Shown here: in pieces, positions 37-25,164 of the stretch
Position numbering within the stretch: the first letter of the stretch is position 1
Layout: every line of letters starts with the position of its first letter
Origin: Auanema rhodensis
Lineage: Eukaryota > Animalia > Nematoda
Reading direction: 5' to 3'
Length of the DNA stretch: 64,000 nt
Assembly (NCBI GenBank): GCA_964057225.1
Contig: OZ059895.1
Location: 7,316,001 to 7,380,000, forward strand
Notes under the pieces: model-generated
The model's database searches: none
What the model was told of the DNA's origin: nothing
Seen by the model: the letters and a program-made list of their open reading frames with translations, nothing else
Made by a program: the position numbers and the translations under genes

Positions 37-798
37 ACCCTTGTCTGAAAGTTTAATAGGACATATTTGAGAAATACAGTAAAAACATGCGGAGAAATAA
101 TAATATTAACAAATCAGTGGTTGAAAAAACTAAGAAATATAGTATTATAAGAAATTTATATAGTAGAGTAATGCAAATTATTATAAAAGTTAGGTATAAA
201 TCAATTTGTGGAATGAATAAACATAGTGAGAAAAGACGAGCATAGTCAAGAGATGGCGTGTAGCAAAGAGTCCGCCTTCCTTGCCCTGTCGGCCTATTTT
301 CACTTTCTCATCCAGCCCCTTCTTGCATCCGTTGACCAGATACAGGTTTCGTCGCGCCTTTTTCATCGGACCAATGCCTCTTTTTACAGTTTCAACATAT
401 CTGCGTTTATCTATTTTCAGTTGTATTTCAAATACCACCTTCTTCAACAGATTGAAGGTACGCTATCCGCTTGAAGATATGCGAGGTGGTGACGATGTTA
501 AAGGGGCCTATAGCTGGACGAACATCTTCCCAATCATACACGAGGAAGCTTATTGATGATCTTCTTTTTTGTCTGTATCTCTAAGAGTGTTCATTATATC
601 GCTAGTGATAATGGCCTTGTTGTTCGCTTAGTCGTCTGTAATTCGAATCCAATTCGTCATTTTGAGGCGTTGAAACAGTAGTATGACGTTGTCGGGTGGA
701 CAATGTCCAGATCGGTGTTCATGCAATCAGTACTTTTTACCAAAATCAAATTAATAATTGTAAATTGTTTTTATTTAGAACGTTAACAACAACTAATT

Positions 799-2944
799 TT
801 AATCAAGTTTTCCACTGATAGGCAAGCTGGCAGCATGAGCCTTCATGAAAACGCAGTATTTTTTCAAAATGGGAACAGCTGCTAGAGATACGGCCGCACT
901 AACGTAACATAGAATTGATGTCTCATCTCTCTCCACGTAGTATCTGAAAAGCGATAGGATTAGTGGATAAGGAGAGACGTTATTGGTTGATTGGGTTTCA
1001 TTCGGTCTGGTTCTCTTGTCTTTCATCTTGTTTCTTGCTTTTGCATCACTTACCCAGTAAGAAGAGGTACCATAGTCATAGCCAACATATGCGACATCCG
1101 AATGAGAGCTGACACTTTTCCGGCATCGTTCTTTCCAACAGTGCTTATGATTTGAGAAGACAGTTCTCCTATACAAACAGATACACCAATCACCTAAAAA
1201 CGTTCAATGTTGTTGTTAATTGATGTTGTATGTCAGTGTTCTCTTTGGTACAAGAAAGATGTATTGGTCAACTGTACGTACTTGAATCGGCATTCCAATG
1301 AAAAGACCTACGTGTGAGGTCATTGTAGATAAGTATAAGTACGAAGATGCAAGAAGTATAAAGGAGCCCATTAGAACATGCTGTGGACCAACACGAGCCT
1401 GTATGAACGGTACCATCCATGCATTTCCGATAAAAGATGCTCCACCAAGTATCAAAAACTATAAAAGCATAGACTTGAAATATATTGTTAAAGATAATCT
1501 AGCTATTCTCTAGTTTCTAATGTTGTCTAATTCTCTTGTAGCTTCAATAGAATTTCTAATATGATCAGCTATATGTTTGTATTTGAACGAGATAGCTAGC
1601 ACGTTTGCTAACATCACCAATACTATAGTCTTTTTCCAGTTCTCAGCTTAACGCTATTAGTTGGGAAGGAACCGATTGATGTAGATAAGAAAGAACTATT
1701 TCGACTCTTCGAGATGAACAAAATGACAGTAAGAAATACCAGTTTGGTAAGCTGTTGGGGATCGCTGGCTACCGTGGCTGAAAGCGATATCCTAACTACT
1801 TGATCATAAGCACTGTATGGTCCGATAACCATCTAGAAATAGAATTTTCATAGTTAACTATGTAATCGATATATGTATATAATATTTATATTTTATATAT
1901 ATAATTATAAATTTGAGTATTTTCTAATTGTTTTTATGCTATATGAAACGAAGATATATTATTAGCTAACCATTAAAAGGATTAAACACCATTTAGTTTT
2001 TGGATTACGAACTAGCTGCAGATATGGTTCCATCTCAGGTATTCGGAACGGCTTTTCTGAAGAAAAAAAATAAGATTTTCACAATTCAATCATTCAAAGA
2101 TGATACGAACGTGATCTGTTGTCAGGAAGATACATGTATGATAGCGTGATGTTGCCGATGAAATTTATAATTCCACATAGGATTTGAGATGATTCAATTG
2201 AAGATGAGAAATAGTATAAGACCTATTTATAATAAATACAAAAATATATTAATTATGATTATATGCTATACTTGAAGAGCAAAATATGGTCCTAAAGCAA
2301 TTCCAATGCTCATAGGTATGGTTAAGCGATTCAAAAATCTTACTCGCTTTTTGTCATCACCATCTTCACCTTCTAAATGAACAACACACGAATATATAAC
2401 CTATAAATAATAATTTTTCATATTTTATTTGAAATATTTCAATTATACCATTGGTACATGACTGAATGCTAATAGAAGTTGCAATGCTACATACAGCCAA
2501 AAGTTTCTGATTTGGCAGATTAAAATCTGAAATCGAATTATCAAAAAGATATGTACGCTATCCAACTCAAAGAAAAAAAATTTGTTTTTTTTTTTTGCAA
2601 CGAAAGTTGATATCGCTTTCATCTGACCTGGTAAATTGCGGTGACAGTTGTACAAAATAAAGCAGTTCGACGTAAACCTTCCTTTTCAATCTGATGTTTT
2701 TATATTTTAAAATTATATTTTATATGTTTTATTAGCTTACCAGATGAGCAACTATAAATGTTCCTAGTAATATACAAAATGATGAGAAAGCATTAACACA
2801 CAAAAGACTAAAAACTGTTGGTCTTGGAGTTAGAATCCATTGACTAAATGGCAGTAGAACTTTCGTCCATTCTTCACTTGTGTGCCAAAATCCACAGATA
2901 AGTAGTAGACTGCTTTCAAGCCGAAGACGCTCACGCTTGTTCAT
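799..2944 (-). CDS. Major facilitator superfamily transporter (SLC22A18/SLC46-like), multi-exon
   Basis: Spliced exons with GT/AG boundaries give successive hydrophobic helices: MNKRERLRLESSLLLICGFWHTSEEWTKVLLPFSQW..., MVIGPYSAYDQVVR..., LGGASFIGNAWMVPFIQARVGPQHVLMGSFILLA..., VIGVSVCIGELSSQIISTVGKNDAGKVSALIRMSHMLAMTMVPLLTG, and last exon ...SLPISGKLD* (stop at 799). Confidence 0.85.
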
Positions 2945-3068
2945 GGCTTGAAATAAAAACTATATGAAACATACAAAAGTCGAAAATGAATCAAAAATTG
3001 AATTAGATATATATATATAAAGAGAGAAAGAACGATACTGTGTTTAAAAGAATGAGGAGAAAGAGGGA

Positions 3069-6100: not shown

Positions 6101-7758
6101 ATTTATATTTATTACTCTGTCAACTTTACCTACATCGTTTTCACTTCCATACCTTATTGTTATATCAATTCTTATAGATTTAGGTTCTATTTCAATTTTC
6201 ATAGCTCATATATACACCATAGATGATTTTTTTTATTTATACTATGTTGATCGAGACTTTTAGATGATAGACTGGAAGAGCTGTTCTTCCACTTTCATCT
6301 CTTTCACCATCTTCCTTTCTCTCTGCCCTATCTATCTCTTCCTCTAGCTTTCTCTCTCACCAGCATCAGCTGATAAACGTAAAACTCAAGTCTTAATTCC
6401 CGATCTCTTTTTTTCTTTTAAGCTATCTTGTTGATTTTTCTGTTCTCGTCCGTTTTTTCCATGAAACCTGGAGAGAAAAGAAAAGCTGTAGAAATTCAGG
6501 CTATGCTGTATAGCATAACTGAGTGCGAGCGAAGATGACATAAAAACGTTGAAAACGATTGAGAGCGAAAGAGATTGACGGAAGCAAACAAATGGCAAAA
6601 AGAAGAAAACGAAGAAAGCAAAGTCCTCTATAGACAGAGAGGCTTGAGATTCAATGCAGCATGATTTAAACCAAAGTTATAGCTGTAGTTGACTTGTACT
6701 CCTAATTTACCAGTCAACAATCATCGATTATACCTATGTATTGCATCATTCAGTAGTTTTGGATGCGTATTACATGCATTGTCTTTAACAATTACCTTCA
6801 TTAGATTATGATTGCATCAATACGAAGTCACGTGCCTGCATCGATGTTGGCCGAAGCGTCATTTCCATATAGAATATTGTGGGGAATGGTTGTATTTCAT
6901 TGTAATTTTTATTTTTCTTTCTCAATATTCATGTTATTATGTTCCGGGGTATTGTTGATGTTTTCTTACTTCCCTATCATAAGAAATGTTTCATTGTTCC
7001 TCTTCTTATCTCGAATCAAGCCTATTCCAGATATTTGTCAATAATCTTCAAATCTTATAGATAAGCATGAAATAAAAGAAAAAAAAACAATTTGAATAAC
7101 AAATTGGGTTTGATGTCTTTTAAATGTTTTTTGTTGTTTTGTTCTTAATTTTCATACTAAACATGCTTAAGAAGTGAAGGTTGGAGGTAATATTTTTACT
7201 TCTTAAAACGAAAGCAAGCGCTCCACTTGACAAACAACAGTTTTATATGATGATCCTTCAAATGTAACCTATTCTGAATGAATTGGTGAATAAGATGTGT
7301 TTATCTGGTTTGCATCATCCATACCAGTTTGATATGTTTCGTTTATTTTCCATGGCATCAGGTGATGCACATCAGTTTTTGGTTCCGTATTTCAATTTCA
7401 TTTTCAATGAGATTCAATTGAAAATGAAGATTGAAACTTTATATACTTGATATGATGTTTGATTAGATTTGGCAAAAGTCTTAACTGTCGTTGTTCTTGT
7501 TTCAGTTTTTCATTTATGAAATTCTTGCGGGTAATGCGTGTAAATCTGCTGGAGACTAGTATGTCACATGCTCTCGTGCAATTATTCCTGAATTTGTGTG
7601 TGTGTCACAACTACACAATTTAAATTGTAAGAGAGAAAAAGAGAGAAAAAAGAATGTATATATGGCAGATATGGCAAGGTCTGACTATTTGGCGGAACTG
7701 TAATGATTGCAGGAAGTATGGTCTTATGAAGGATAGTGACATAAGAGAAAGAAAAAAA

Positions 7759-7797
<39 letters not shown>

Positions 7798-8679
7798 GCA
7801 AAGTGACGAAGAGAGTTGGTAGACTGTATACAAGCTAGTTTTTCTATAAATGTATATATGTATGAAGTTCTTAACCATATATAGACAGTTTTTTCCTCCA
7901 AGTGATAATGAACTAGTAATCTGTTTTGATCGGTAAAAATGTCCGAAGACTGCTTCAATTCCTGTTGGCAGATAGAAATTAATCATTTGAGAAATATATT
8001 CAAATATAATATTGTAAATCTATGTTTTATATATTTTTTTTCTCTCGAAACCCTTTCACTCAATTTTTGCCCGAAATATCGGCATGTGTACCTCTATTTC
8101 ATTGTGAATGTTTTTAGTTTTAATCAGAATATAGTGTGACATCATGATTGAAATTCAAAATGGTATGAATTCACATTTGTGTTTGTGCAGTTTCTCGGAC
8201 AAAAAAATGAGAAAGAGAAAAGAGGAGAGAGAAAGAGAGAAGGTGAAGAAGAGGAAGAGGAAAAGAAATCTAAATGATTCTTAGTTCATAACAATGCCAA
8301 GAAAGACTGTTCTTTCTCTTTTTTTTCAACAACTACTTCTCTTCTTTTCCTCCTTCACAATCTTTTCATATCTGTTGTTCTTTCTCACCATGTGGCATTC
8401 TAAAACTGAACTTTTCATTTCACTTTGTTTAGAGATTATTATCGTAATATCATACTCTGAAATGAAAACTTTATAATTTAAATTCTTATTAGTTTTTCTT
8501 TCTTTATTAATCTTTAACATGAAGTAATCTCAAATTATTTTAGAAGTTAAATGTTATAACTCGAATTAAAAAAAAAAAGAACAAAAAAAACCTTTCATCA
8601 CTTCATTGGATGTCAAGGCAAATTAATTGGTATTGTTCTTTCTATATGCTCAGAAATATAGAGAGAGAGAGAGAGGGTG

Positions 8680-8967: not shown

Positions 8968-10538
8968 AATCTTTTTCTTCAATCTGATGCTTTCTTTTGA
9001 ATGTATGATTGTTCTTCTAGAAAACGATATCTGGAGCTTCTCTATCATGTTGAATATACGGCGACCATATGGCTAACATCATCTGCTGTGTTCTGTGGAT
9101 TTTTCATCTAATTAAAGTCTCGGTTGACCTCTATTATCGATACATGTTTGATCACATGTACACAAAGCGTCTATCTTGAGCAGTCCTTCTCTCAATAGCT
9201 GCATCTTTACTATCTTTCTCAAATCATTTCTCTTATTTTTGCATTTTAATTTCATTGTGTTATTCTGCCAAATTACCGTTAAGTTGAAGTCAGTCATTGA
9301 TGACTATTGTGATGTGCTTGTATTGAATTCTGTGACACAAACACACATATTTTCTCTCTCATCTTCAGAAGATGCTATTGAAAAGAGGTTCGTCATCTTC
9401 TTCAATAATGAGTGGAACTATATTAGGTCTTGCCTCCAGCTGATTGTCGTCTTGTCTTCTGCTATAATACATTGCTTCTGTCACCGATTGACTTTCCATG
9501 TTTTTGTAATTGCTTTGATTCTCCTCCCAACAACCAAACCCCCCCCCCCCTTCAGCACCATTAACCATTTTAGTTTAGTTGATCAATTGATAACAATGGC
9601 AGCTTGTTTTTTTGCGTTTTATACAACAAATATGATCAGATTGATAATGTATAGATAGTAAATAGTTTAAGAGATATGTTAAGAGTTGCTAACAGTTTCA
9701 AACCTGCTCTGTAATGTCTGGAAGAGAAAGAAGAAATAGAGACATTTACGATCTATGAAAGATGGCTCTTCATTATCAATTCTTTGTCTTCTATACTTTC
9801 ATCATCAGTGTCATCCTCCTATATATACTGTCAATCATTTCAATCTTCATAACGAAATTCAATCGTATAGACTAGTGAAAGAATGAAGAGCTTTGTTGAA
9901 ACATGCAACCGTTAAGATGAAATGGATGGTCTCACTCATCTTCACTGACCTGTTTGAATTTGAAGGTGCAAATTCTGAGTAAATACTATAGTATTATTCA
10001 ATTAATACACTTTACTATTTTATTTTAATATAAGATTAATCATATAAGATTATCAATAAACTCATTTGACTTATTCAATGAATTGAATCGGCATTTCCTT
10101 TGCCATTATGTCATTTGTGATTTGCCTTAACAGCAATCCTCTCATTCTATCTCTTTCTTTAATCTATTTAACTACAACAACAACTAATATGATGACTACT
10201 ACTCCTTCTCTCTTAGATTTTTCTTCTTTATATTATTATTCAAGCAACAACATATTATAATAGCAGTAGATTGATGCCAGTTATTGGTCATCACATCTCG
10301 CTCGATTATCTCTCTTCTCTTCTCGCACCAGCTTCAGATTCTTATAACAAAGAAAAGTCATATGAGCTGCTGCGGGGGTGTTAGTAAGAGATTTGCTGAT
10401 CAGGCTCCAGGTTACAACCTTTTTCACAATCTCTCTCGCGGTATGTAATCTCTTCTTATCCCTCGCTAACTTTTCCTTTCTTCCGTTCCTTTTTCTACCT
10501 ATGCTTTCGTCATCACTTCACCCTCTCTTTGTGCGAGC

Positions 10539-10564
10539 TATAAAGTATTTCTTCATTCTCCCTT

Positions 10565-10606
<42 letters not shown>

Positions 10607-10647
10607 GCTCTCTCTCTCTCTCTCCCTCTATCTATTTTGGTGTAAGT
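10539..10647 (+). promoter_or_regulatory. Candidate TATA box, CT-rich non-coding first exon and splice donor for the gene at 12025
   Basis: TATAAA at 10539-10544, a CT tract, then consensus donor GTAAGT at 10642-10647; the acceptor TTTTCAG ends at 12022. Confidence 0.4.
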
Positions 10648-11638
10648 GACCTCGCTGCACCTCACTCTCATCAATTTATCCTGTTTTTTTTCTTTCTTTT
10701 CTTTGATTTCTGTTAATTCAAAATTTTGAACTGTAACACGTGATTCTATGCTGAGGATATCTGCAACAAACATACGCCTCCTAAAGCCCGTCTGTTGAGT
10801 TTGTAACATGAACGGACCTCTTTCTCCATATATCGCTTTTCGTCTGCCATTCTGCTCTCACTCTTTCAAGCCATATTTTCTCTTTTTCTTTCGTTCTCTT
10901 CGTTATATTTGGTATATGCATATACATAGATCCAACATTTTTCTTATATTCTTTTCTCTCTTCTGTTATATGAATTTGAGTATCGATCAGGAGCATGTTT
11001 ACTTTTCTTCTGACATAGCTTCTCTAAATATTATCGTCGTCGTTGACTTCATCATAATCGTTGTCATATGCCATATAGCTTGTTCATTTATTTGTTTCAT
11101 ACAATGTAGTTGTTCTCTTTGTAAGATCTCTACATAATTAATCATATGAAAAGTATCTTCAAAGGGAAGGGGTGGACGAGCTGTTGCCTGTTTTCAGCTT
11201 GTTTTGGACTTCTTTTTTTTGTGGAAACGGGCAATCATGCTAGCACGTGGTCGTCTGAATCGAAGCAAGGTCGATGCTGTCTCATAGCTTTTAATCTGCT
11301 TAAAATTAGTGTATTATTTAATCTATCCTATTCTTATGCTTTACGTTTCATGTTCTCTCTCTCTCTTTATCTTTCTCACTTCTTTTTTTTTTGAATTTCC
11401 TTATATTTCCGTCTGAATGTGTGATATCATTCACAAAACAGTTTGATCTATCCCCGTTGTTCTTTTAAAGACATGTCATCCGATGTATGTTGCTAACATA
11501 CCTCCTAGCACGTGAACTATTGTACAAAGACTGGATTCGGCTGTCTTTCAGCTATTATTTCCAAGGACGAGAAGCATAAGAGAAGCATCAAAATGAAAGT
11601 AGTTGAATCAGATACGAGAAAAGTTGGGCAGAGAAGTA

Positions 11639-11642
<4 letters not shown>

Positions 11643-11692
<50 letters not shown>
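11643..11692. repeat. (CT)n microsatellite
   Basis: Direct dinucleotide run. Confidence 0.95.
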
Positions 11693-11700
<8 letters not shown>

Positions 11701-12024
11701 TTCTCCCTGTAAAATACTTAGCACTTGGATACATTTCAGTATCTTTGTAGTTGACGTCTTCTCTCTTCCTATATCTCTTTCTCTCCAAACAGAGAATATC
11801 AGCTGTTGATATTTGCAAAATTCACAGCACAACTATCATTTAAGCATAAAGAATATGCTTTTTACCCTTTGTTTGTTTCTCATATTTTAAACTTTGAAAT
11901 GTGTTAAACAGCAGCATGTAAGATGATCCTACATGCTATTCTTCTTTCAATTTACAATATTTATCTCAATATTTTCATTGTTGTTTTCATTTATTTTATG
12001 ATCTTATTTTCCTATTTTTCAGGA

Positions 12025-15000
12025 ATGGAGAGGGAGCGCAGCCTCTCAGCCTCATCATCGGACTCATGGTCCGTTATAGATCATAGAGTGAGTTTCTTTC
12101 TTTTTTCAAATAAATATTTCAAAGCTCTATAGTTTCAAAAACAGAAAAAAAATATTCTGTGATACAATAGAAGTAACAAAGAATTTACTTTTACAAATAA
12201 CCATTTTTTCTTTCTTTCTTTTTTTTCCGTTAAACCATATGCACAAACATTTCTTCAGTTTTTTTTTATTTTTTGACATTTTTCGGAGAAAAAAAAGATA
12301 TTTTGATGGTCAATTGATTATATAATATTTATTTAATATTATAAATAGTATATATATATATATATAGAAAATATTGATTTGTTATTTTCAATCAAACTGA
12401 GCAATGATTTGCAATATACAACTTCTGCTTTCTGTTCGTTGTTCGAGTTGTTTTGAGCAAAATGCAGTTAAATGTTTTTTTTCAAATTAGTTCTGACACA
12501 AATATTTTGGAATTATATATTTATACTAACTATTTCAGAGAACATCATCATGTGATGATTCAGATGATGGAGAACAGAGTATAAACTTGAGTATGGATGG
12601 TGATCATGCTGTTATTGTTGATGAAGCATTCGTACCTTCTTATGATGAAGATGACGACGATGTAATAGACGAATCGGATATGGATATAGATTCTGATATT
12701 GAAGTTGCTCATGAAGAGAGTGATGACGATGACGAAAATGATGAACTTGAGGAACTTGATGAAACTCAAGATGAAGATAGTGATGATGATTCTGAAACCG
12801 ATCAAGATGAAGATGATAATGACGAGGAAGAGGAACTAGAAAAAAACAAAAAGAGAGAAGTAGAAGAGGATGATGAAGAAGAAGAAAAAGAAGAAGAAGA
12901 AGAAGAAGAAATTGAAGTCCAATCCGAGGAATGTTATTCCACAGATGAAGATGAAACTGAATCCGTTTGGGTAAACCGTGAAGATATCAGAGATAGTGGA
13001 GGACTTTACTTTGAATGTCCTGAACATATTAAATCTTCCTTTGATGAAATAGGTTTGTTTATACAACTTTATTTTCTTTACTATATGTATAATTAGATCG
13101 TAAAGAAGGATGGAAATTGATTGCACGTGCAATTCTATTCTATTTGGGAATGGTTGGTGCTTCTCTGGTGCTTCAAGCTGGCTGGCAAATGTATAAGAAG
13201 GAGATGCCTGAACCAGTAAGTAACTTTAATAGATCTTCTATTTAGTTTTATAACATATTTCTTCAAATAAAATAAATTATTTATAGGATTATCCTGTGTT
13301 AGTTGTCGATATCTATGGTCTGCAGTACCATGGAATCGGCGTTGACGTTCAAGATATGTCGTTCAGTGTATGTTTTATTGTTTTTTTTTCTTCTAGTAAT
13401 TGTTATTTAAATTTTCTATTTCTTTTTTTTTCAGAGATCCTCATCAGCTGTCTGTCCAACAAGAGAGTATATTAGTAATGTAAAATTAAATTTTAACATT
13501 TTTTTTGAAAAAAATATAAAATACTTCAGACTTCTCGTTGTCAGCAAAGAAGACACTCATGGAGATCTGCTCTGCTAGCCATGCGTGCAAATAGAAAATC
13601 TGGAAAAGAATGGGCTTCTGAGGTACATTAACAGCTTTTATTTTATTAAAATTATATAATATTATATGAATATTATTATACATATATATATATATACTTA
13701 TAATATTGAGTGATATATAGCCATTGGCTAATATTTTCTTCTGAGACATATGCCTTTATTCACATAAATGTCATTGATTTACCGATGGCTGCTTACAGAT
13801 TCCTTCTGGCTTCTCATCTCACATTACCTTCTCTAGTGATATGTATTTACGACGAAATAATTCCCGTTTTGAGGTAAGAACTTCATATTATTCATCAGAA
13901 GTTTGAAATATATCTTCTTCTTCAGGTATTATCAAGACTTGTACAAAGCCGTCCTAATAGTTCTTCTCACATCTCAACATTCACCAGAATCACACGATCA
14001 ACATTGACTGTTGGCACAAATTCTTCCAGTTTCTGTCCAAGATGGTCAACTCCTGCATTGACTCGTCCAATGTTAAGACGTGCACCATCTATTCAATCAA
14101 TGCCACAAGTTGCTGCTGCTCGTCGCCAAGCTAAACTAGTTGAGCATGTCTGTGTATGTAATTTTCAATCTAATCAAACTTTCTGACCTTTCAATCAAAA
14201 ATTTCTAATCTGAACCTCATGTGATATTGATATTCAGTTCTTTGTCACATCATCAACATCTCTTACTCATTCTCTCATACACAATCTTTGTTTCTCTGTT
14301 TCGTTCTTTACTCTCTGTATCCCTGACGTTCAAAAATTTCTTAAGCTCCTCCCACTGAGCCTTATCTGGATAACCTGGTGTTCATTTAGTATAGTATGTC
14401 TCGCAACTAGTAGCGTCGTTTATGAGCTGACCTACTTTGTTTAAGCTTTTAACGCCATTTACAGTTAATGTTCTCATTTATTAATTCATCTTAATCCTTT
14501 TTAAAATTTAAAATTGAACTTTAATATTGATTACGTATAGTTTATTTTCTTATTTTCATTATTTTAGGTTAGACCGAAATCCAATAAGGCCGTACGGGCT
14601 TTTGCCCAAGTACGGGGCCCTACTCGTCCACCAACGAGCTTCGCTCAACGGGTTTGTCTAAATATTTTCTTAAAATCTTAATGAATATGTTATTTTTAGA
14701 TGAAGTCTTTACCGAAAACAAGGGTCACATCTAAATGTCTAAGAGCACCTGTACAAATTCCAAAGAAATGCTCAAAGAAGCCACCGATGTTATTCCAAAC
14801 AACGCGTCGTATTCGATTAGCAAAACCTAATATTTTGATTGCTCCCCCACGCAATAGAATAACTATGCCAAAGAATAACATCTCAACTATCAGTTCGCCA
14901 AGCTGTGCCATCAAGAAGTCTAAAAGATTATCATCATGGACTTCAAGACATAATAATGTAAGTATTATTATTATATTAAAACTATATACATATATATCTT

Positions 15001-16026
15001 AACTATATGTCTTTATAGCCGGTTCCTAAACCCTCGGTAACTCGACCATTACTCCCAAGAACCTATAAGGCACCAAAACCAAAAACTTACGCTGTTGGAC
15101 CTGTTCATCAGAGAAGTCTAGCTCCATGTGTTCCTAAGGTAAATTATTTCATATTATTAATCTTAATTATATATATTTATTCTAGAAATCTGTTATTCCA
15201 TCATTCAAAAAACCAAAAGTTCTATACCATGAACAAGCATATATATCATCATTTGAGGTAAAGCATTAGATACAAATTGATTACATTTTATTGAAAATAT
15301 CTCATCAATCTATTAATATATTATATTGTTGATTATATGAATATAGTTACTATAGTAACTATAAATTAATATTTTAATCGAATGATACAAAATTGGAAAC
15401 AATGATGATTTATCCGATTAAGGATTAAAGAATATTATACATATATGTTTATATAAATATATAATTAATTCTAATTATTGTAGAAATCAAATAATGTTTT
15501 ATATGGAACTAATACTAATAAGACCAAACATTATGGACAATGTGGTAACAGATTCTGGAAAAAGAGAAAGAATCAAATGAATCAGAGACATAGAGAAAGC
15601 CGAAAAGAAATTGATCATAAGCTACCTGTTCCATGTGCAGCTAAATACAGTATGTTTTATATATATTATATATTATATATTATATATATATTAAAGATTA
15701 TTATATAAAATTTTGATTCTAGAACTTGAATCATCACTCGTTGCTCGTAAGCGATACAATGTAGCTGAAATCCGTTTACAATCAAATTACAAGTATCAAG
15801 GAAAAACGTATAATTCTTCTATTATTAGGTAAGTTATAAATAAATAAATAATATTAAATTATTTTATATAATTTTCAGAAAAGGATATAAGAAGATGAAG
15901 AAGGATATTATCCCATCTAAAAAGATTGTACAACCAAAATGTCATTTTGATTCTCGCCCACGTAAACATCATGAGTGGAAATTAAAACAAATGGCAAAAT
16001 ATCATTCTCATACATCTATCTTCTAA
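12025..16026 (+). CDS. Single-pass type II membrane protein: acidic N-terminus with LIR/FIR-like motifs, one TM helix, long basic C-terminus (CCPG1/PBXIP1-like architecture)
   Basis: About 15 in-frame exons with canonical splice sites. MERERSLSASSSDSWSVIDHR, then a D/E-rich exon containing DSDIEV, TM ...WKLIARAILFYLGMVGASLVLQAGWQMYKK, R/K/P/S-rich exons, ending ...HSHTSIF* at 16024-16026. Confidence 0.8.
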
Positions 16027-18013: not shown

Positions 18014-18637
18014 CTAGACGAATGCTTCTTTCTCAGTTTTCGTTTTCTTATTATGACCAAATAAGACGAAGAAATAAAACCAAAGAATAACTGAACATAG
18101 TCCAGTTAGTGCCACTGCCACAATCAGAAAAAGCAAAAAGCTGAAAAAAGAAAATTTGAATTCTCAAATGTTTTCTATATAATTCAATCATCTCGCTCAA
18201 CACAAGCGATCGATGTACTTTATGATCACAGTGATCGAAGAAGAAATAGGGTGAGAGAAGTCGACTACATCTAACATCGTATACGTAGCGTTCGTGGTGT
18301 AATGGTCAGCATGGATGCCTTCCAAGCATTCGACGGGGGTTCGATTCCCCCCGAACGCAGTACATTTTTTCTTTTTCAATTTTTTTATAAATTACATTAA
18401 AGTAAACTTTGTTACTTTTTACAGACAAAAGAAAGCAATAAACTTCGTTTAAACAATAAAGTTCAATAATTTCACAAATTTAAACTGTTTCATAGCAGTG
18501 CAAAGGTACTTTTACTACAAGTACGTTCCGAAAATTCTCTATTTCTTTCATTGAATTTAAAATTTTACAAACCTCATTACAAATTCTTGAGAAGGACTCA
18601 GTGTAGCTGATAGAGCTTCAACTTCGACAGCTTCCAT
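18014..18637 (-). CDS. Two-exon 63-aa single-pass membrane microprotein: MEAVEVEALSATLSPSQEFVMSFLLFLIVAVALTGLCSVILWFYFFVLFGHNKKTKTEKEAFV
   Basis: TTTTAG acceptor 9 nt before AATCATG. Exon 1 is 18637-18573 with a GTTTGT donor; exon 2 is 18140-18014 after TTTTTTCAG. Phases match. Long hydrophobic stretch followed by a basic tail. Confidence 0.75.
18288..18359 (+). tRNA. tRNA-Gly (anticodon TCC)
   Basis: 72-nt cloverleaf GCGTTCG...CGAACGCA, A box TGGTGTAATGG, anticodon TCC at 18321-18323, B box GGTTCGATTCC, T-run Pol III terminator just downstream. Confidence 0.98.
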
Positions 18638-19206
18638 GATTTTAGACTAAAACATAACTTTGAACGATCAAACACAAATATTAAAAAGTCGATAAAATAT
18701 AATCGGACTAAAAGGAAATGAATGAAAAAAACTAAAAATAGATGTCAAATAGCAAATAAAATGTAAATTTTTAAAAATTTATACAGTATTATCGGATAAC
18801 ATTGAAATAGATTATAATGATATGACTAATGGCATGAAAACTAATTGAAATATGGAAAAAGGGATTGGAGGAAGAAGGAACAGGACCAGATGAGGATGGA
18901 GCAGGAAACAAGAGAAAAGATGCAATTGAAGTGTCACTTGGTTCTTACACATCATAAACTTAGCAGTGCATATGCTATTCAATAAATTCTTATTATAATA
19001 TCTTCAGTTTTTAAAATAATTTAAGAAAAAAAAATTGTCATCGAATCAAATAATGGATGGAAAAGTATGATGAAGCTTGAGTACACTCAGTTTAATTCAC
19101 GTAAAACATTGTCGAAAAGAGCGAGCGGAACAAAATTTATGAAAAACGAGGAAAATATTTTAGTTGAAAAAGGGAAAAAGAAACAAAAAAAAGTTTCATC
19201 ATTTGG

Positions 19207-21687: not shown

Positions 21688-24196
21688 AAAAGAAGGAAGG
21701 AAGATGATATAAGGTATGTGTGTTCTGATATTATGTATTGAAAAAGAAATATTTCTGACGAATACTAAAGATAAATATTTATAAATTTATCTATCTATGT
21801 ATATTTTACGAAGCTTATATTAAGAATAGTATAGTTTATAGATTGAATGTCAATTTGTGATGTGATTCTATAGATTACATGATCATTTCATGATGAGACA
21901 TTACATATAATTTAACATATTTGATGTGAAAATCATGAAATGTTAAATATTTTTGTATTTGTAAATCAATCATAATAATAGTTTTGTATTTTGCTTGAAT
22001 AAAGATTTTTTTTTGTTCTTTTACTATATGATATAGTTAATTAGAAATATTTTTTTATAATAAAATACAAATAATATTTATAATTAATCTCACACATTGA
22101 TATAAGTTTCTCATTCAACTTAAATGGTATATACATGGGAATGACCGATAGTATTTGGCACGTGCCATGAACACATATTCCACGTTCTCAACTTGAGTGG
22201 AACATTAAGGCTGAGAGAATTTCGACTTCTCATAGATGATGTTGTTCACATCGATTATATCACATGGTTAAGAAAAAATTAGTCAAACTGAACATATACC
22301 TAACTTCAGTTTGCAGATGTTGCTTCTACTCATGATGATGATGATGATGGTGATGATAGTATCATTGTTAATTATTCATTATATAGTTAATTCAATGTTT
22401 TCTTTAACCATATTTATTTCAATTTTTGTAAAAAATATATTTTTTGACAAAAAAATTGAACGAATTGACTCTTTCTATTGAAGTCAATCTCACTTACTGC
22501 CTCAAATATTTCGTTTCCGTTTTCATTACACCTATTTCTAAATCTATATAAAAATACATAAAAGTTATGATATAAATTAATATAAAATAAAATAAATTTT
22601 TATCTAAATTTATTTTTTTAAAAATAATTTTATTATTATATTTATATTATCTTTGACTCATTTTTTTTTCATTTTCACCACATTAATCACTATGAAATTT
22701 TCAAAATTGTTTCTTCTTATCTTCTGTATGTGCCGGTCCTATCTGTTTTTTTTTACGAGAAAAAAAAAGGGTTCATCTTCTATCAGCTTCAATTGACTTC
22801 TTTCACCTTTGTACATTGTTTCATTTCTATTTATTATTATTATTATATTATATTATTTAAATTTATAAAGTATAGTATAATCAAAGTATAAGAAAGTATA
22901 TTTTACTTTATAATTTCAACATCATCATCATCATCATCATCTATTTATTTTATTTTCTTAATTTTATATTTTAATTCCTTTTTTAATAGTTAAATATATT
23001 ATATATTTAACTTATATCATATACATACATATACATAAGATGTTGAACAATGAGGAACACTGTTCCTTAAATCATTTTCAGTGTTTCAAAATCTTATGTA
23101 TGTAGAAAAGAGGGAGGAGTATATGACTACTGATAAAGAATCTCTCTCTCTCTCTCTTTTTCTCTTCCGTTCTTTTACTTTTTCTGAATACTTTTTTATT
23201 CTCATAGATTTATCGTTATATGTATATATGATATACTAGTTTTCTTATTCTTTTTCTATATTTCATATGTTCATTATTCACTTTTTCTATTCGACCCCTC
23301 ATACTTTTTCTCTCTAATACTCTCTTGTACGTTAATGTTACGAACAGAAGCATTTCACGGCATTTCCTTTCATATCTATCTGATAATTATACAAGAAGGC
23401 ATGAATTAATGACCAAAATTTACAATCACTATCAATAACTGATTGAAATGACATGATAGACATTCCAAATAAGCTTTTTAGATGTTCTCTAATCCTCTTT
23501 GATTAAACTTTTTCATATTTTGTACCACAAATATGGAGTTGTATGGAGATGTTAGCTACTGAATCTGTCTTCTCTACTACTATTCATTATCTCATTTTCA
23601 TCTTTTCACACTCTCGTCTCTATATTTCTGGTTTACTTACGCATTAACCGACAAAGCTTCTGCCGACAATGCATCTGATTGTCTGACAGAGCCTGAACTC
23701 TGTCAGGTGTGCTTGTTTGTTCATCGAAAACAGTTTCTACTTGCAATAGGCTTGAAGTTTGCTTTTAGGTCTTCCGGCACAACTGTTTCCGGCTATGTAC
23801 CAGCCTGAACATGTGCCAGTGCTTTAGCATTGATCATGAACACAAAAATGGAAACAAAGCGTATCGTCGGCTTTTTTTGCATGTTTGATGTTCGGTTAAG
23901 ACATTGAGACGTAAACTGAAAAGTCGGCACACGTGCCCCTCACACTCTTTCATGTTTTGCCGACCATTCTTTGCTTCTCTACTCACTCTACAGTTTCTAC
24001 AATCATTTTGTACTTCTTTTCAGTATGTGACTCAAGCTGGATAGCTCATATCCAATTTGATTCATTCAGATGTTCTCTTCGAGAGAGTAGGGCAACTACA
24101 AATTACATCTGATTACCCTTCTTTCCGTTTTCAATTCGTTTTCTTCTTCGATGTTTTCTATCTAAAAAATATCCGAATTAAGTTGCTTTTTTCAGA

Positions 24197-25164
24197 ATGA
24201 TCTCCGATACTGAATTGATCAATCATCATCAAATGACTGCACAACTTCTGAATACTACACCCCCTCTCAAAGAAACGTAAGAGAAGCTACATGTACTTGT
24301 TATCAATACAATCTTTGCAGCTTTTGTGATGCTCTCCTTTTACCTGGAAAATCTTATGATATTCCATCACCTAGTCTTGATGGTAGCTTTTCATTCATGC
24401 AGCCACAATCTGCTTGGACATCTCTAAACTCAACTCCCACACCATCAGCATCCACAATCTGTTATCCACCAGTGGTAAGCTAAATCGCTCTAATATCCCT
24501 TAACTATAATAATTTATTTAAGCAAGTTATGTATGGAATGATGCCTTATTGGATGATGTCTCCAACACTTACAACACCATCTAATCTTCTAACACCAACA
24601 GCTTCCACGAATAGCACGACGTCATCAGTTTCTGCTTCTCCAGCAATTGTATCAAGGCCTCACACAGAACCATTATATGAATGGATGAGAAATCACGAAA
24701 AGGATCCATATCCAACAAGACGTGAGAAGGAATTTCTCGGTCGCATCTGTGGCATGACATCTCGACAGGTTTGTTTTGAAAACTTTTTTTTACATGAAAA
24801 AAAAACAAATTTCTAGAACATTTGTCTAACGAAAACATCTTTTTTAGATTGAGCATTGGTTTGCTAACGCTCGCCGACGAATGAAAAAGATGAATAACTC
24901 GAAAAGACTTCGTTCATCACTTGGATCAACAGAGTACGGTCCAGAAAAAGATGGTTCGTTATTACTTTATATATTATTATATTATAAATTATAAAATTTA
25001 TAGATGATTCTACTTCTCTTCTCACGTCATCATTTTCATCATCATCCTCTTCGGAAGGCGATGTCATAGTGCGATCCTCATCATCTATTACGGAAAAACT
25101 GAATAGTGAGCCGGAAATCAAAAAATCTAAAGGCATCTGGTCGATAATTAGCACATTACAGTAA
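24197..25164 (+). CDS. Divergent TALE-class homeobox protein (Iroquois/Mohawk type), 5 exons
   Basis: Spliced homeodomain ...HTEPLYEWMRNHEKDPYPTRREKEFLGRICGMTSRQ|IEHWFANARRRMKK has the PYP TALE loop and WFANARRR (Ala50). C-terminal KKSKGIWSII resembles the IRO box. Confidence 0.9.

Follow-up and report, generated by a model that had tools for sequence, protein, structure and literature searches.

We found a gene on the forward strand of the 64-kb window (the whole stretch of Auanema rhodensis DNA that was analyzed) that encodes a 723-aa protein with GT-AG junctions throughout (Table 1). The splice acceptors are of the nematode type, (t)ttcag, and an acceptor (tttcag|GA, at 12022|12023), a candidate for SL trans-splicing, directly precedes the start ATG. 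Four sequencing runs from one study contain 0.43 of the words of this stretch, of which exons make up 0.54; this hints at transcript contigs. No paralogue of the gene was found in the window, and tblastn of the window with the orthologue described below matched the exons of this gene only.

Table 1. Features of the locus, with positions in the window and residues of the 723-aa protein.
Feature	Position	Strand	Description
Conserved non-coding block, 81 nt	10958..11038	.	Some 1 kb upstream of the ATG, here and in JU1783
Whole gene	12025..16026	+	15 exons, 723 codons and stop; ATG at 12025, stop at 16024-16026; frame unbroken over 2172 nt
Exons 1-5	12025-12087, 12539-13052, 13097-13215, 13287-13367, 13435-13479	+	GT-AG junctions
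Exons 6-10	13530-13622, 13799-13873, 13926-14153, 14568-14651, 14700-14957	+	GT-AG junctions
Exons 11-15	15019-15138, 15186-15257, 15484-15649, 15723-15828, 15879-16026	+	GT-AG junctions
Exon 1, aa 1-21 (MERERSLSASSSDSWSVIDHR)	12025..12087	+	R3-x-R5, Ser/Asp run, LIR-type core
R3-x-R5	12031-12039	+	In exon 1
Ser/Asp run	12049-12066	+	In exon 1
LIR-type core W15-S-V-I18	12067-12078	+	W15 codon TGG at 12067-12069, within ...SASSSDSWSVIDHR
Acidic tract, aa 26-160	12551..12955	+	Rich in D/E/S, disordered; from the charge profile
Island A45-F52 (AVIVDEAF)	12608-12631	+	Conserved hydrophobic island in the acidic tract
Island D72-S-D-I-E-V77	12689..12706	+	Second conserved hydrophobic island in the acidic tract
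Juxtamembrane block, aa 162-198	12959..13113 (12959-13052 + 13097-13113, intron between)	+	Most conserved long block
FFAT-like core L177-Y-F-E-C-P-E183	13004-13024	+	In the juxtamembrane block
F189-D-E-I192	13040-13051	+	In the juxtamembrane block
Predicted TM helix, aa 199-221 (KLIARAILFYLGMVGASLVLQAG)	13114..13182	+	Single; top Kyte-Doolittle segment, best 19-residue mean 2.06
Post-TM region, aa 222-723	13183..16023	+	Basic (net +80), rich in S, K, R, P
Conserved post-TM blocks, aa 230-246	13207-13215 + 13287-13328	+	Orthologue alignment
Conserved post-TM block, aa 323-341	13850-13873 + 13926-13958	+	Orthologue alignment
Conserved post-TM block, aa 468-492	14799-14873	+	Orthologue alignment
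Conserved post-TM block, aa 627-644	15610-15648, continuing into exon 14	+	Orthologue alignment
Post-TM N-x-S/T sequons	N274, N325, N341, N362, N494, N596, N670	+	From the sequence

Across all databases searched, a single homologue was detected: a syntenic 680-aa protein of Auanema sp. JU1783, 48% identical and likewise encoded in 15 exons. The JU1783 model was annotated independently and corroborates the exon structure in A. rhodensis. Five exons have lengths that are identical between the two species (63, 119, 120, and 72 nt) or at most 3 nt apart. The exons of the neighboring MFS gene are mostly 73–94% identical between the two species, against 48% for this protein. The neighbor on the other side is an Iroquois-type homeobox gene. 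The locus is a real, fast-evolving nematode gene.

An exhaustive phmmer search with exon 2 gave the Auanema orthologue as its sole match, through the juxtamembrane block. Word-index searches with the full length, with aa 125–680, and with aa 1–45 returned the query itself and nothing else. Pfam recognized no domain in the exons or in the orthologue, and a PDB sequence search gave no match. The ESM Atlas yielded no relative by features or by structure (every TM-score below 0.4; model pLDDT 0.37). A metagenome scan by protein found no relative either, and the back-translated SDSWSVIDHR pattern gave four chance matches on contigs of 55–63% GC. The family appears to be lineage-restricted, so far to A. 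rhodensis and Auanema sp. JU1783. Because there is just one orthologue, the depth of conservation is minimal.

The protein is predicted to be disordered except for one transmembrane (TM) helix. In the AlphaFold2 model of the orthologue, this helix is the only confident part (pLDDT of about 80), and pLDDT is below 50 throughout the post-TM region. On these predictions, the product is a disordered single-pass membrane protein. Only 7 of the 23 helix residues are identical in the orthologue, as expected of a simple anchor. The net charge is −76 over the 198 residues before the helix and +80 over the 502 after it, in agreement with the sequence-only reading, which had described an acidic region before one TM helix and a basic region after it. 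As a lumenal domain, 500 aa with a net charge of +80 would be unusual.

Six of the seven sequons after the helix occupy the same positions as sequons in JU1783 (P<1e-5 if placement were random), and control triplets are kept 0–1 times. None of the sequons in the N-terminal part is co-located between the species. This pattern supports a lumenal C-terminal part and a cytosolic N-terminal part, and it lends independent support to the type II topology that had been proposed earlier. The charges flanking the helix are neutral and carry no topology signal. In the opposite topology, the acidic N-terminal part would be lumenal, of a Ca2+-buffering type, and the basic C-terminal part would bind nucleic acid or ribosomes in the cytosol or nucleoplasm. 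The positive-inside rule would indeed put a +80 domain in the cytosol, and the neutral flanks do not contradict this. However, such an arrangement is at odds with the placement of the co-located sequons. It would also require translocation after synthesis of a 198-aa part that has no signal peptide, and conserved N-terminal di-arginine and LIR-type motifs would be meaningless in the lumen. We consider the opposite topology very unlikely.

Adjoining the helix, 37 of 48 residues (aa 151–198) are identical between the species, while synonymous sites are saturated (pS 0.84); constraint here is thus at the protein level only. The block contains the FFAT-like sequence LYFE[C/S]PE in both species. 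We scored it by the 2012 element rules, in which the core is close to EFFDAxE, taking F or Y at position 2, an acidic residue (D/E) at 4, and a small one at 5; Y2, E4, and C5 are tolerated, and S5 works too (PMC3261905). Positions 2–7 are acceptable, and position 1 is a non-acidic Leu. The acidic tract is absent from the six residues before the core (IRDSGG and IRESGG, net charge 0); acidity sits further upstream. The candidate motif is borderline, with about two suboptimal elements, a level at which targeting is 'barely discernible' (PMC3261905). About 15 residues separate the motif from the membrane.

It is nevertheless conceivable that the protein is primarily a VAP-binding protein, with this motif engaging VPR-1-type proteins of the VAP/MSP-domain class, either in cis in the ER or in trans at a contact site, whether or not the LIR functions. 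The pairing of a LIR with an FFAT motif has reportedly been described by Zhao et al. (2020, cited in PMC12992112) in the soluble ER-phagy receptor of fission yeast. The motif lies within the most strongly protein-constrained block, and a core of this kind arises in 4.5% of shuffles, a post hoc figure. Y-F-E-C-P-E resembles the functional EFFEC-S of Rab3GAP1, and S5 works in AKAP220 (PMC3261905). Unlike known FFAT clients of VAP, including fission-yeast Epr1, the Auanema core lacks an acidic position 1 and an adjacent acidic tract, and the protein that carries it is itself membrane-anchored close to the motif. We regard a primarily VAP-binding role as quite improbable.

The other strongly conserved segment is the N-terminus. 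Of the first 28 residues, which include WSVI, 26 are identical in JU1783. The DNA of the exon 1 region is identical at 79 of 84 nt, and the identity ends exactly at the acceptor and the donor. Synonymous sites take part in this conservation: pS is 0.16 in exon 1 versus 0.68 gene-wide, with 3 differences in 18.7 sites (binomial P of about 4e-6), and the local dN/dS of 0.17 was judged no lower than the gene-wide value (about 0.26). Because the synonymous sites are frozen too, the conservation of WSVI is not clean evidence of a protein-level LIR, and that of the exon 1 peptide may reflect nucleotide-level constraint. Two small hairpins are predicted in exon 1, with the substitutions outside the stems of the window sequence. 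Their stability is not special relative to shuffles (z of −0.3 and −0.9), and RNA structure was rejected on this ground as the cause of the synonymous conservation. No Rfam family was found in 9000–15600.

The core W15-S-V-I18 stands between S-S-S-D-S and D, and the earlier reading had placed this SSSDSWSVI correctly, with its W at 12067. An LIR is expected to have a core of the form [W/F/Y]xx[L/I/V] that is exposed in a disordered cytosolic region and follows residues that are acidic or can be phosphorylated, and LGG-1 accepts W-type LIRs (PMC7615515). The Auanema core fits this pattern, with acidic or Thr/Ser residues upstream, and lies inside the disordered N-terminal part (pLDDT below 50 over aa 1–69 of the orthologue). 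At the motif level, the Ser/Asp cluster with W-S-V-I would be a canonical W-type LIR. Shuffling of the N-domain, a post hoc statistic on a biased composition, gave an acid-preceded [WFY]xx[LIV] in 41% of cases and [ST]D[ILV][DE] in 33%. A W-type core in the first 30 aa with at least three D/E/S/T before it arose in 1.6%. With this composition the motifs alone are weak, and WSVI and DSDIE stand above chance because they are kept in the orthologue.

The same exon begins with M-E-R3-E-R5 in A. rhodensis and M-E-R3-K-R5 in JU1783. The N-terminal retrieval rule for type II ER proteins asks for two Arg at positions 2–3, 3–4, 4–5, 2–4, or 3–5 (PMC2799409). R3-x-R5 fits this rule as a putative di-arginine ER-retrieval signal; a placement of this type occurs in 0.7% of shuffles, again a post hoc figure. 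The residue between the arginines is Glu in A. rhodensis, which was counted against an ER-retrieval reading.

The N-terminus may serve another purpose. It is distinctly possible that the protein is a type II glycoprotein that acts through its basic lumenal or extracellular region, for example on acidic lumenal or matrix partners, and that the N-terminus directs sorting, acts as a phospho-regulated degron, or is kept as a nucleotide-level element of the mRNA instead of binding ATG8. Triadin-like basic lumenal tails bind partners of this kind. The frozen synonymous sites of exon 1 mean that conservation of the peptide need not reflect selection for a LIR, and LIR-type cores come easily in this composition, as the more frequent of the two LIR shuffle values illustrates. 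Several conserved blocks and all conserved sequons are post-TM, and Pfam found no autophagy-related domain or homologue with the exons or the orthologue. Against this stands the context of the core: it is of the W type, has a Ser/Asp run before it and an Asp behind it, and sits at the very N-terminal end of a cytosolic domain predicted to be disordered. This is a textbook LIR setting and the rarer shuffle outcome. The known alternative motifs are no better a match: [DE]xxxL[LI] breaks down at the Leu, and the W-acidic type does not fit. The shuffle-like hairpins speak against a nucleotide element.

In the acidic tract, 40 of 84 aligned residues are identical and the lengths differ greatly between the species. 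DSDIEV lies where the sequence-only reading had located it and is DSDIEL in JU1783, so that DSDIE is kept. The FIR consensus is psi-Theta-x-x-Gamma, in which Gamma must be L/I/V (PMC7946963, PMC7615515). In CCPG1, FIR1 is S22-D-I-E25 and FIR2 consists of S104, D105, I106, and L109; Gamma is essential, and L109A disrupts binding (PMC7946963). The Auanema strings, DSDIEV-A and DSDIEL-A, have Ala at Gamma in both species and do not fit, and the proposal that DSDIEV is FIR-like fails at this position. Among conserved segments, only S14-W-S-V-I18, the LIR stretch itself, agrees with that consensus.

We set the layout of CCPG1, taken from published descriptions, beside that of the Auanema protein (PMC5791736, PMC7946963, PMC10092646). 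The LIR of CCPG1 is CGWTVI and directly precedes FIR1, which was mutated at S22–E25 (PMC7946963, PMC5791736). Its lumenal region exceeds 500 aa and has four conserved regions, and no other known receptor binds cargo through a large region in the lumen (PMC10092646). Both proteins would share a type II layout with a cytosolic N-domain that is disordered and about 200 aa long (230 in CCPG1), a LIR of the form W-x-V-I that follows Ser/Asp about 15 residues into the protein (with W at aa 15 in Auanema), an S-D-I-E string, one TM helix, and, behind it, about 500 aa dotted with short conserved islands. Their total lengths are similar (723 versus 757 aa). The Auanema N-domain is far more acidic, and the C-terminal part is far more basic and predicted to be wholly disordered. 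The cited papers were not seen to report an N-terminal R-x-R or an FFAT-like motif for CCPG1.

The sequence-only reading had called the gene a candidate CCPG1-type ER-phagy receptor, either a remote homologue of CCPG1 or a convergent receptor. The order of motifs (a W-type LIR, an acidic tract with DSDIE, a TM helix, and about 500 aa) is real and kept in the sole orthologue, and the type II layout is supported as well. The FIR and the sequence link to CCPG1 are not supported. None of phmmer, the three word-index searches (one with the N-terminus alone), Pfam, PDB, and Atlas features, all short of a direct profile–profile comparison with CCPG1, gave a detectable relationship to CCPG1 or to any other family. 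A true orthologue that diverged beyond the reach of sequence searches would account for the parallels in layout. However, the family could not be traced beyond the two Auanema nematodes, whereas CCPG1 is described as vertebrate-specific (PMC5791736, PMC10092646). SDIE lies at aa 73–76 and not at 22–25 as in CCPG1, and it has no hydrophobic residue at Gamma. Disordered regions are places where short motifs readily converge. Nothing in the evidence points to common descent with CCPG1, and we regard orthology as highly improbable. The literature found describes no nematode counterpart of CCPG1, and a 2025 review of autophagy in C. elegans is silent on CCPG1 and ER-phagy (PMC12005284).

Our best reading, which we hold tentatively, is an ER-resident, LIR-bearing receptor that is analogous and not homologous to CCPG1. 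The gene, its orthologue, the pattern of conservation, the disorder, and the co-location of sequons are what the analysis shows. From sequence features we infer how the protein lies in the membrane, that it resides in the ER, that it binds ATG8, and that it acts as a receptor; the functional part is built wholly on short motifs in a biased composition. The product would be a type II single-pass membrane glycoprotein in which a disordered region, a TM helix, and a second disordered region follow one another. The acidic N-terminal 198 aa would face the cytosol, and the basic C-terminal 500 aa with its sequons would be lumenal within the secretory pathway, most probably in the ER. The near-invariant N-terminus would join an R3-x-R5 ER-retrieval-type signal, a phosphorylatable Ser/Asp cluster, and the W-S-V-I core. 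If this LIR binds a GABARAP-like ATG8 (LGG-1 type), the protein would tether its membrane, and the cargo of its lumenal conserved blocks, to the phagophore. It would then work as an ER-phagy-type receptor like CCPG1 or yeast Atg39, and LYFE[C/S]PE next to the helix may add VAP binding.

A fuller version is unlikely. It takes the protein as an independently evolved, CCPG1-like bispecific type II ER-phagy receptor with R-x-R retention, a phospho-regulated LIR to LGG-1 that possibly doubles as a FIR for ATG-11/EPG-7, possible FFAT-like docking to VAP, and lumenal cargo held by the conserved islands of the glycosylated basic 500-aa domain.

Yeast Atg39 is a perinuclear-ER and nucleophagy receptor of single-pass type II topology. 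Its short cytosolic part is disordered and holds both a motif for Atg8, at the N-terminus, and a region that binds Atg11; its C-terminal part is lumenal. The Auanema protein would share the topology, the N-terminal Atg8-binding-type motif, and the lumenal C-terminal part. Atg39 is much smaller, shows no sequence relationship to it, and has an amphipathic-helical lumenal part in place of a basic disordered one. In nematodes, the ER-phagy factors reported so far are the long isoform of RET-1 and TMEM-131, together with a dependence on IRE-1 (PMC12992112; bioRxiv 10.1101/2024.07.26.605287). RET-1 and TMEM-131 are membrane proteins of the ER whose cytosolic regions are disordered and carry LIRs that were predicted or tested, a combination also proposed for the Auanema protein. 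They belong to conserved families (reticulon and TMEM131), whereas the Auanema protein is an orphan with another predicted topology and a large, putatively lumenal region.

The identification of nematode ER-phagy receptors is only at its beginning (PMC12992112). A working LIR receptor at this locus would mean that the combination of an N-terminal LIR, one TM helix, and a long lumenal region can arise repeatedly, and it would offer a genetically tractable nematode entry to lumenal-cargo ER-phagy. As a convergent receptor, it would be the first receptor of lumenal ER-phagy cargo in a non-vertebrate and would clearly exemplify convergence in motif architecture. If the protein is not a receptor, it is a well-defined instance of a disordered, rapidly evolving protein that mimics functional motifs. 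It also presents a puzzle in exon 1, where synonymous sites are frozen between two species in which such sites are otherwise saturated.

Upstream of the gene lies an 81-nt block with no Rfam match and no fold signal (z of +0.1 and +0.6). It is identical at 79 of 81 nt to the JU1783 locus, and its flanks are unalignable. The block may be regulatory or a 5′ non-coding exon, and it is a candidate part of this gene.

On reassembly of the gene, the motifs of the sequence-only reading fell at exactly the coordinates it had reported, and its transmembrane (TM) helix and charge features were confirmed. The introns are of the nematode type, in a window that is AT-rich (30% GC); all splice junctions are GT-AG, and most acceptors take the form (t)ttcag or (t)ttag. 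The N-terminal sequence of the protein is MERERSLSASSSDSWSVIDHR. There is a single hydrophobic segment (aa 199-221), and the net charge is -76 N-terminal to it and +80 C-terminal to it. An acceptor (tttcag/GA) directly abuts the ATG, and the mRNA would therefore be trans-spliced or carry an upstream non-coding exon. AlphaFold2 on the single orthologue sequence predicted a disordered protein (mean pLDDT 39) with the TM helix as its only ordered part. The ESM Atlas model is likewise disordered outside the helix, so the protein appears to be a TM helix flanked by two disordered regions. Any function would, on these models, be carried by short linear motifs.

Features of the gene and its surroundings (window positions unless L001, the JU1783 locus, is named)
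Feature	Position	Strand	Description
Gene under study	12025-16026	+	15 exons, 2172 nt continuous frame, 723 aa
Start ATG	12025	+	W15 codon TGG at 12067
D72-S-D-I-E-V77	12689-12706	+	proposed FIR-like motif
81-nt non-coding block	10958-11038		~1 kb upstream of ATG; 79/81 identical to L001 ~9143-9222
Extra 67-nt window intron	13368-13434		divides what is one exon in JU1783 (L001 11169-11264)
Extra JU1783 intron	L001 10830-10873		within acidic exon
MFS-type transporter gene, multi-exon	~200-2960	-	orthologous to PF07690 gene, L001 1317-3568
Synteny anchor	18017-18646		conserved, collinear with L001 14622-15159
Synteny anchor	24182-24480		conserved, collinear with L001 19070-19363

With exon 2 as query, HMMER run exhaustively over 1.84 billion representative proteins returned exactly one match, P0001, a 680-aa protein from Auanema sp. 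JU1783 annotated as an 'unnamed protein product'. Its locus is collinear with the window (MFS transporter gene upstream; the small conserved ~18.0-18.6 kb locus and ~24.2 kb homeobox region downstream), and exact spliced alignment likewise gave 15 exons, five of which match the window exon lengths or differ by at most 3 nt. Because of this collinearity and the matching exon structure, the two genes are orthologues, and the window belongs to a rhabditid related to JU1783. Their intron positions differ slightly, and a second MFS gene lies further upstream on L001. Full-length, aa 125-680 and N-terminal 45-aa queries against 5.8 billion clusters recovered the query itself only; Pfam, PDB sequences, the ESM Atlas and two scans of metagenomes yielded either nothing or chance matches. 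At the available sensitivity this is an orphan family, and the remote homology to CCPG1 proposed earlier found no sequence link in the HMMER, cluster, Pfam, PDB, Atlas or metagenome searches.

The charges flanking the TM helix carry no topology information. Seven N-x-S/T sequons follow the helix in each species, and 6/7 are co-located in the alignment (P<1e-5 for random placement), one of them straddling the same exon junction in both. The control triplets in this region (Q-x-S/T, K-x-S/T, S/T-x-N, N-x-K/R) are co-retained 0-1 times, and no sequon before the helix is co-located. This pattern gives good, if indirect, support to glycosylation of the basic C-terminal part, which would hence be lumenal or extracellular, with the acidic N-terminal part cytosolic. 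It backs the type II orientation assumed at the outset and conflicts with the opposite topology, which is very unlikely.

The two proteins are 48% identical, compared with 73-94% for most exon peptides of the neighbouring MFS gene. Synonymous sites are saturated gene-wide (proportion of synonymous differences, pS, 0.68; dN/dS roughly 0.26), and six islands are conserved (aa 1-30, 162-203, 230-246, 323-341, 468-492 and 627-644). The block just before the TM helix (37/48 residues identical, pS 0.84) shows the strongest protein-level constraint in the gene. This block is constrained at the protein level only, unlike exon 1. At the N-terminus 26/28 residues match, S-x-D-S-W-S-V-I-D-H-R-R included, and the first 28 codons (12025-12108, exon 1 plus 21 nt of exon 2) are identical at 79/84 nt. 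They hold 3 synonymous differences versus ~13 expected (binomial P ~4e-6), with pS 0.16, so that synonymous sites are almost frozen. The identity starts exactly at the acceptor and stops at the donor. Local dN/dS (0.17) is not lower than that of the gene as a whole. Shuffled sequences form hairpins just as stable as the two predicted in exon 1. Some nucleotide-level constraint probably acts here too, and for this reason conservation of the peptide cannot be credited cleanly to selection on an ATG8-binding motif (LIR). The main rival reading, in which the membrane glycoprotein has a different role and its N-terminus is kept for something other than ATG8 binding, is a serious if somewhat doubtful possibility.

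W15-S-V-I18 has the canonical LIR form, with Ser/Asp before it and Asp after it, at a disordered end predicted to be cytosolic, and it is identical in P0001. The LIR of CCPG1 is CGWTVI (PMC7946963), and nematode LGG-1 takes W-type LIRs while LGG-2 favours Phe (PMC7615515). DSDIE is also kept in P0001, where the acidic tract has a small island of hydrophobic residues. The FIP200-binding motif (FIR) consensus is [D/E/S/T][D/E/S/T]-[F/W/Y/I/L/V]-x-x-[I/L/V], and L109A in FIR2 of CCPG1 disrupts binding (PMC7946963, PMC7615515). DSDIEV, previously read as FIR-like, departs from this consensus, since the last position is Ala in both species (DSD-I-E-V-A, window; DSD-I-E-L-A, JU1783). The LIR itself (S14-W-S-V-I18) is the sole match kept in both species. 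Both proteins carry Arg3 and Arg5 (MERER, window; MERKR, JU1783), in keeping with the N-terminal di-arginine ER-retrieval rule, which holds for type II proteins (PMC2799409). The juxtamembrane block contains L-Y-F-E-C/S-P-E, in which Y2, E4, C5 and S5 are working FFAT substitutions (PMC3261905). It is a borderline FFAT motif because the acidic first residue and immediate acidic tract are absent (PMC3261905). In post hoc shuffles, the di-arginine pattern arose in 0.7% and the FFAT-like motif in 4.5%; a generic acid-preceded LIR core (41%) and an S-D-I-E-like string (33%) are common in such composition.

The best-supported reading, which we hold tentatively, is of a type II glycoprotein resident in the ER that would recruit ATG8 through its cytosolic N-terminus and so act as a receptor in the manner of CCPG1 or Atg39. 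VAP binding might assist it, and the conserved lumenal islands would be candidate sites for cargo or partners. In layout it resembles CCPG1, whose lumenal region exceeds 500 aa and contains four conserved regions (PMC10092646). The architectural analogy stands, but the results do not support placing the protein in the CCPG1 family, because homology was sought without success and one of the defining motifs fails. True remote orthology is most improbable. CCPG1 has been termed vertebrate-specific (PMC5791736, PMC10092646). Neither CCPG1 nor ER-phagy figures in a 2025 review of C. elegans autophagy genes (PMC12005284), and the nematode ER-phagy factors known to date are RET-1, TMEM-131 and IRE-1 (PMC12992112). 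The searchable literature yielded no described nematode counterpart. The earlier interpretation is partly supported, and the protein is a candidate receptor on the basis of motifs in two species.

The flanks of the conserved 81-nt block cannot be aligned between the species, and the block itself matched no Rfam family and showed no sign of a fold. It may act as an enhancer or promoter element, or be a non-coding 5' exon that uses the acceptor at 12022. (CT)n/(GA)n runs recur in the upstream intergenic DNA (~11630-11700, 7700-7800, 10560-10640), and (AT)n runs occur in several introns of the gene (e.g. ~12350-12366, 13680-13700).
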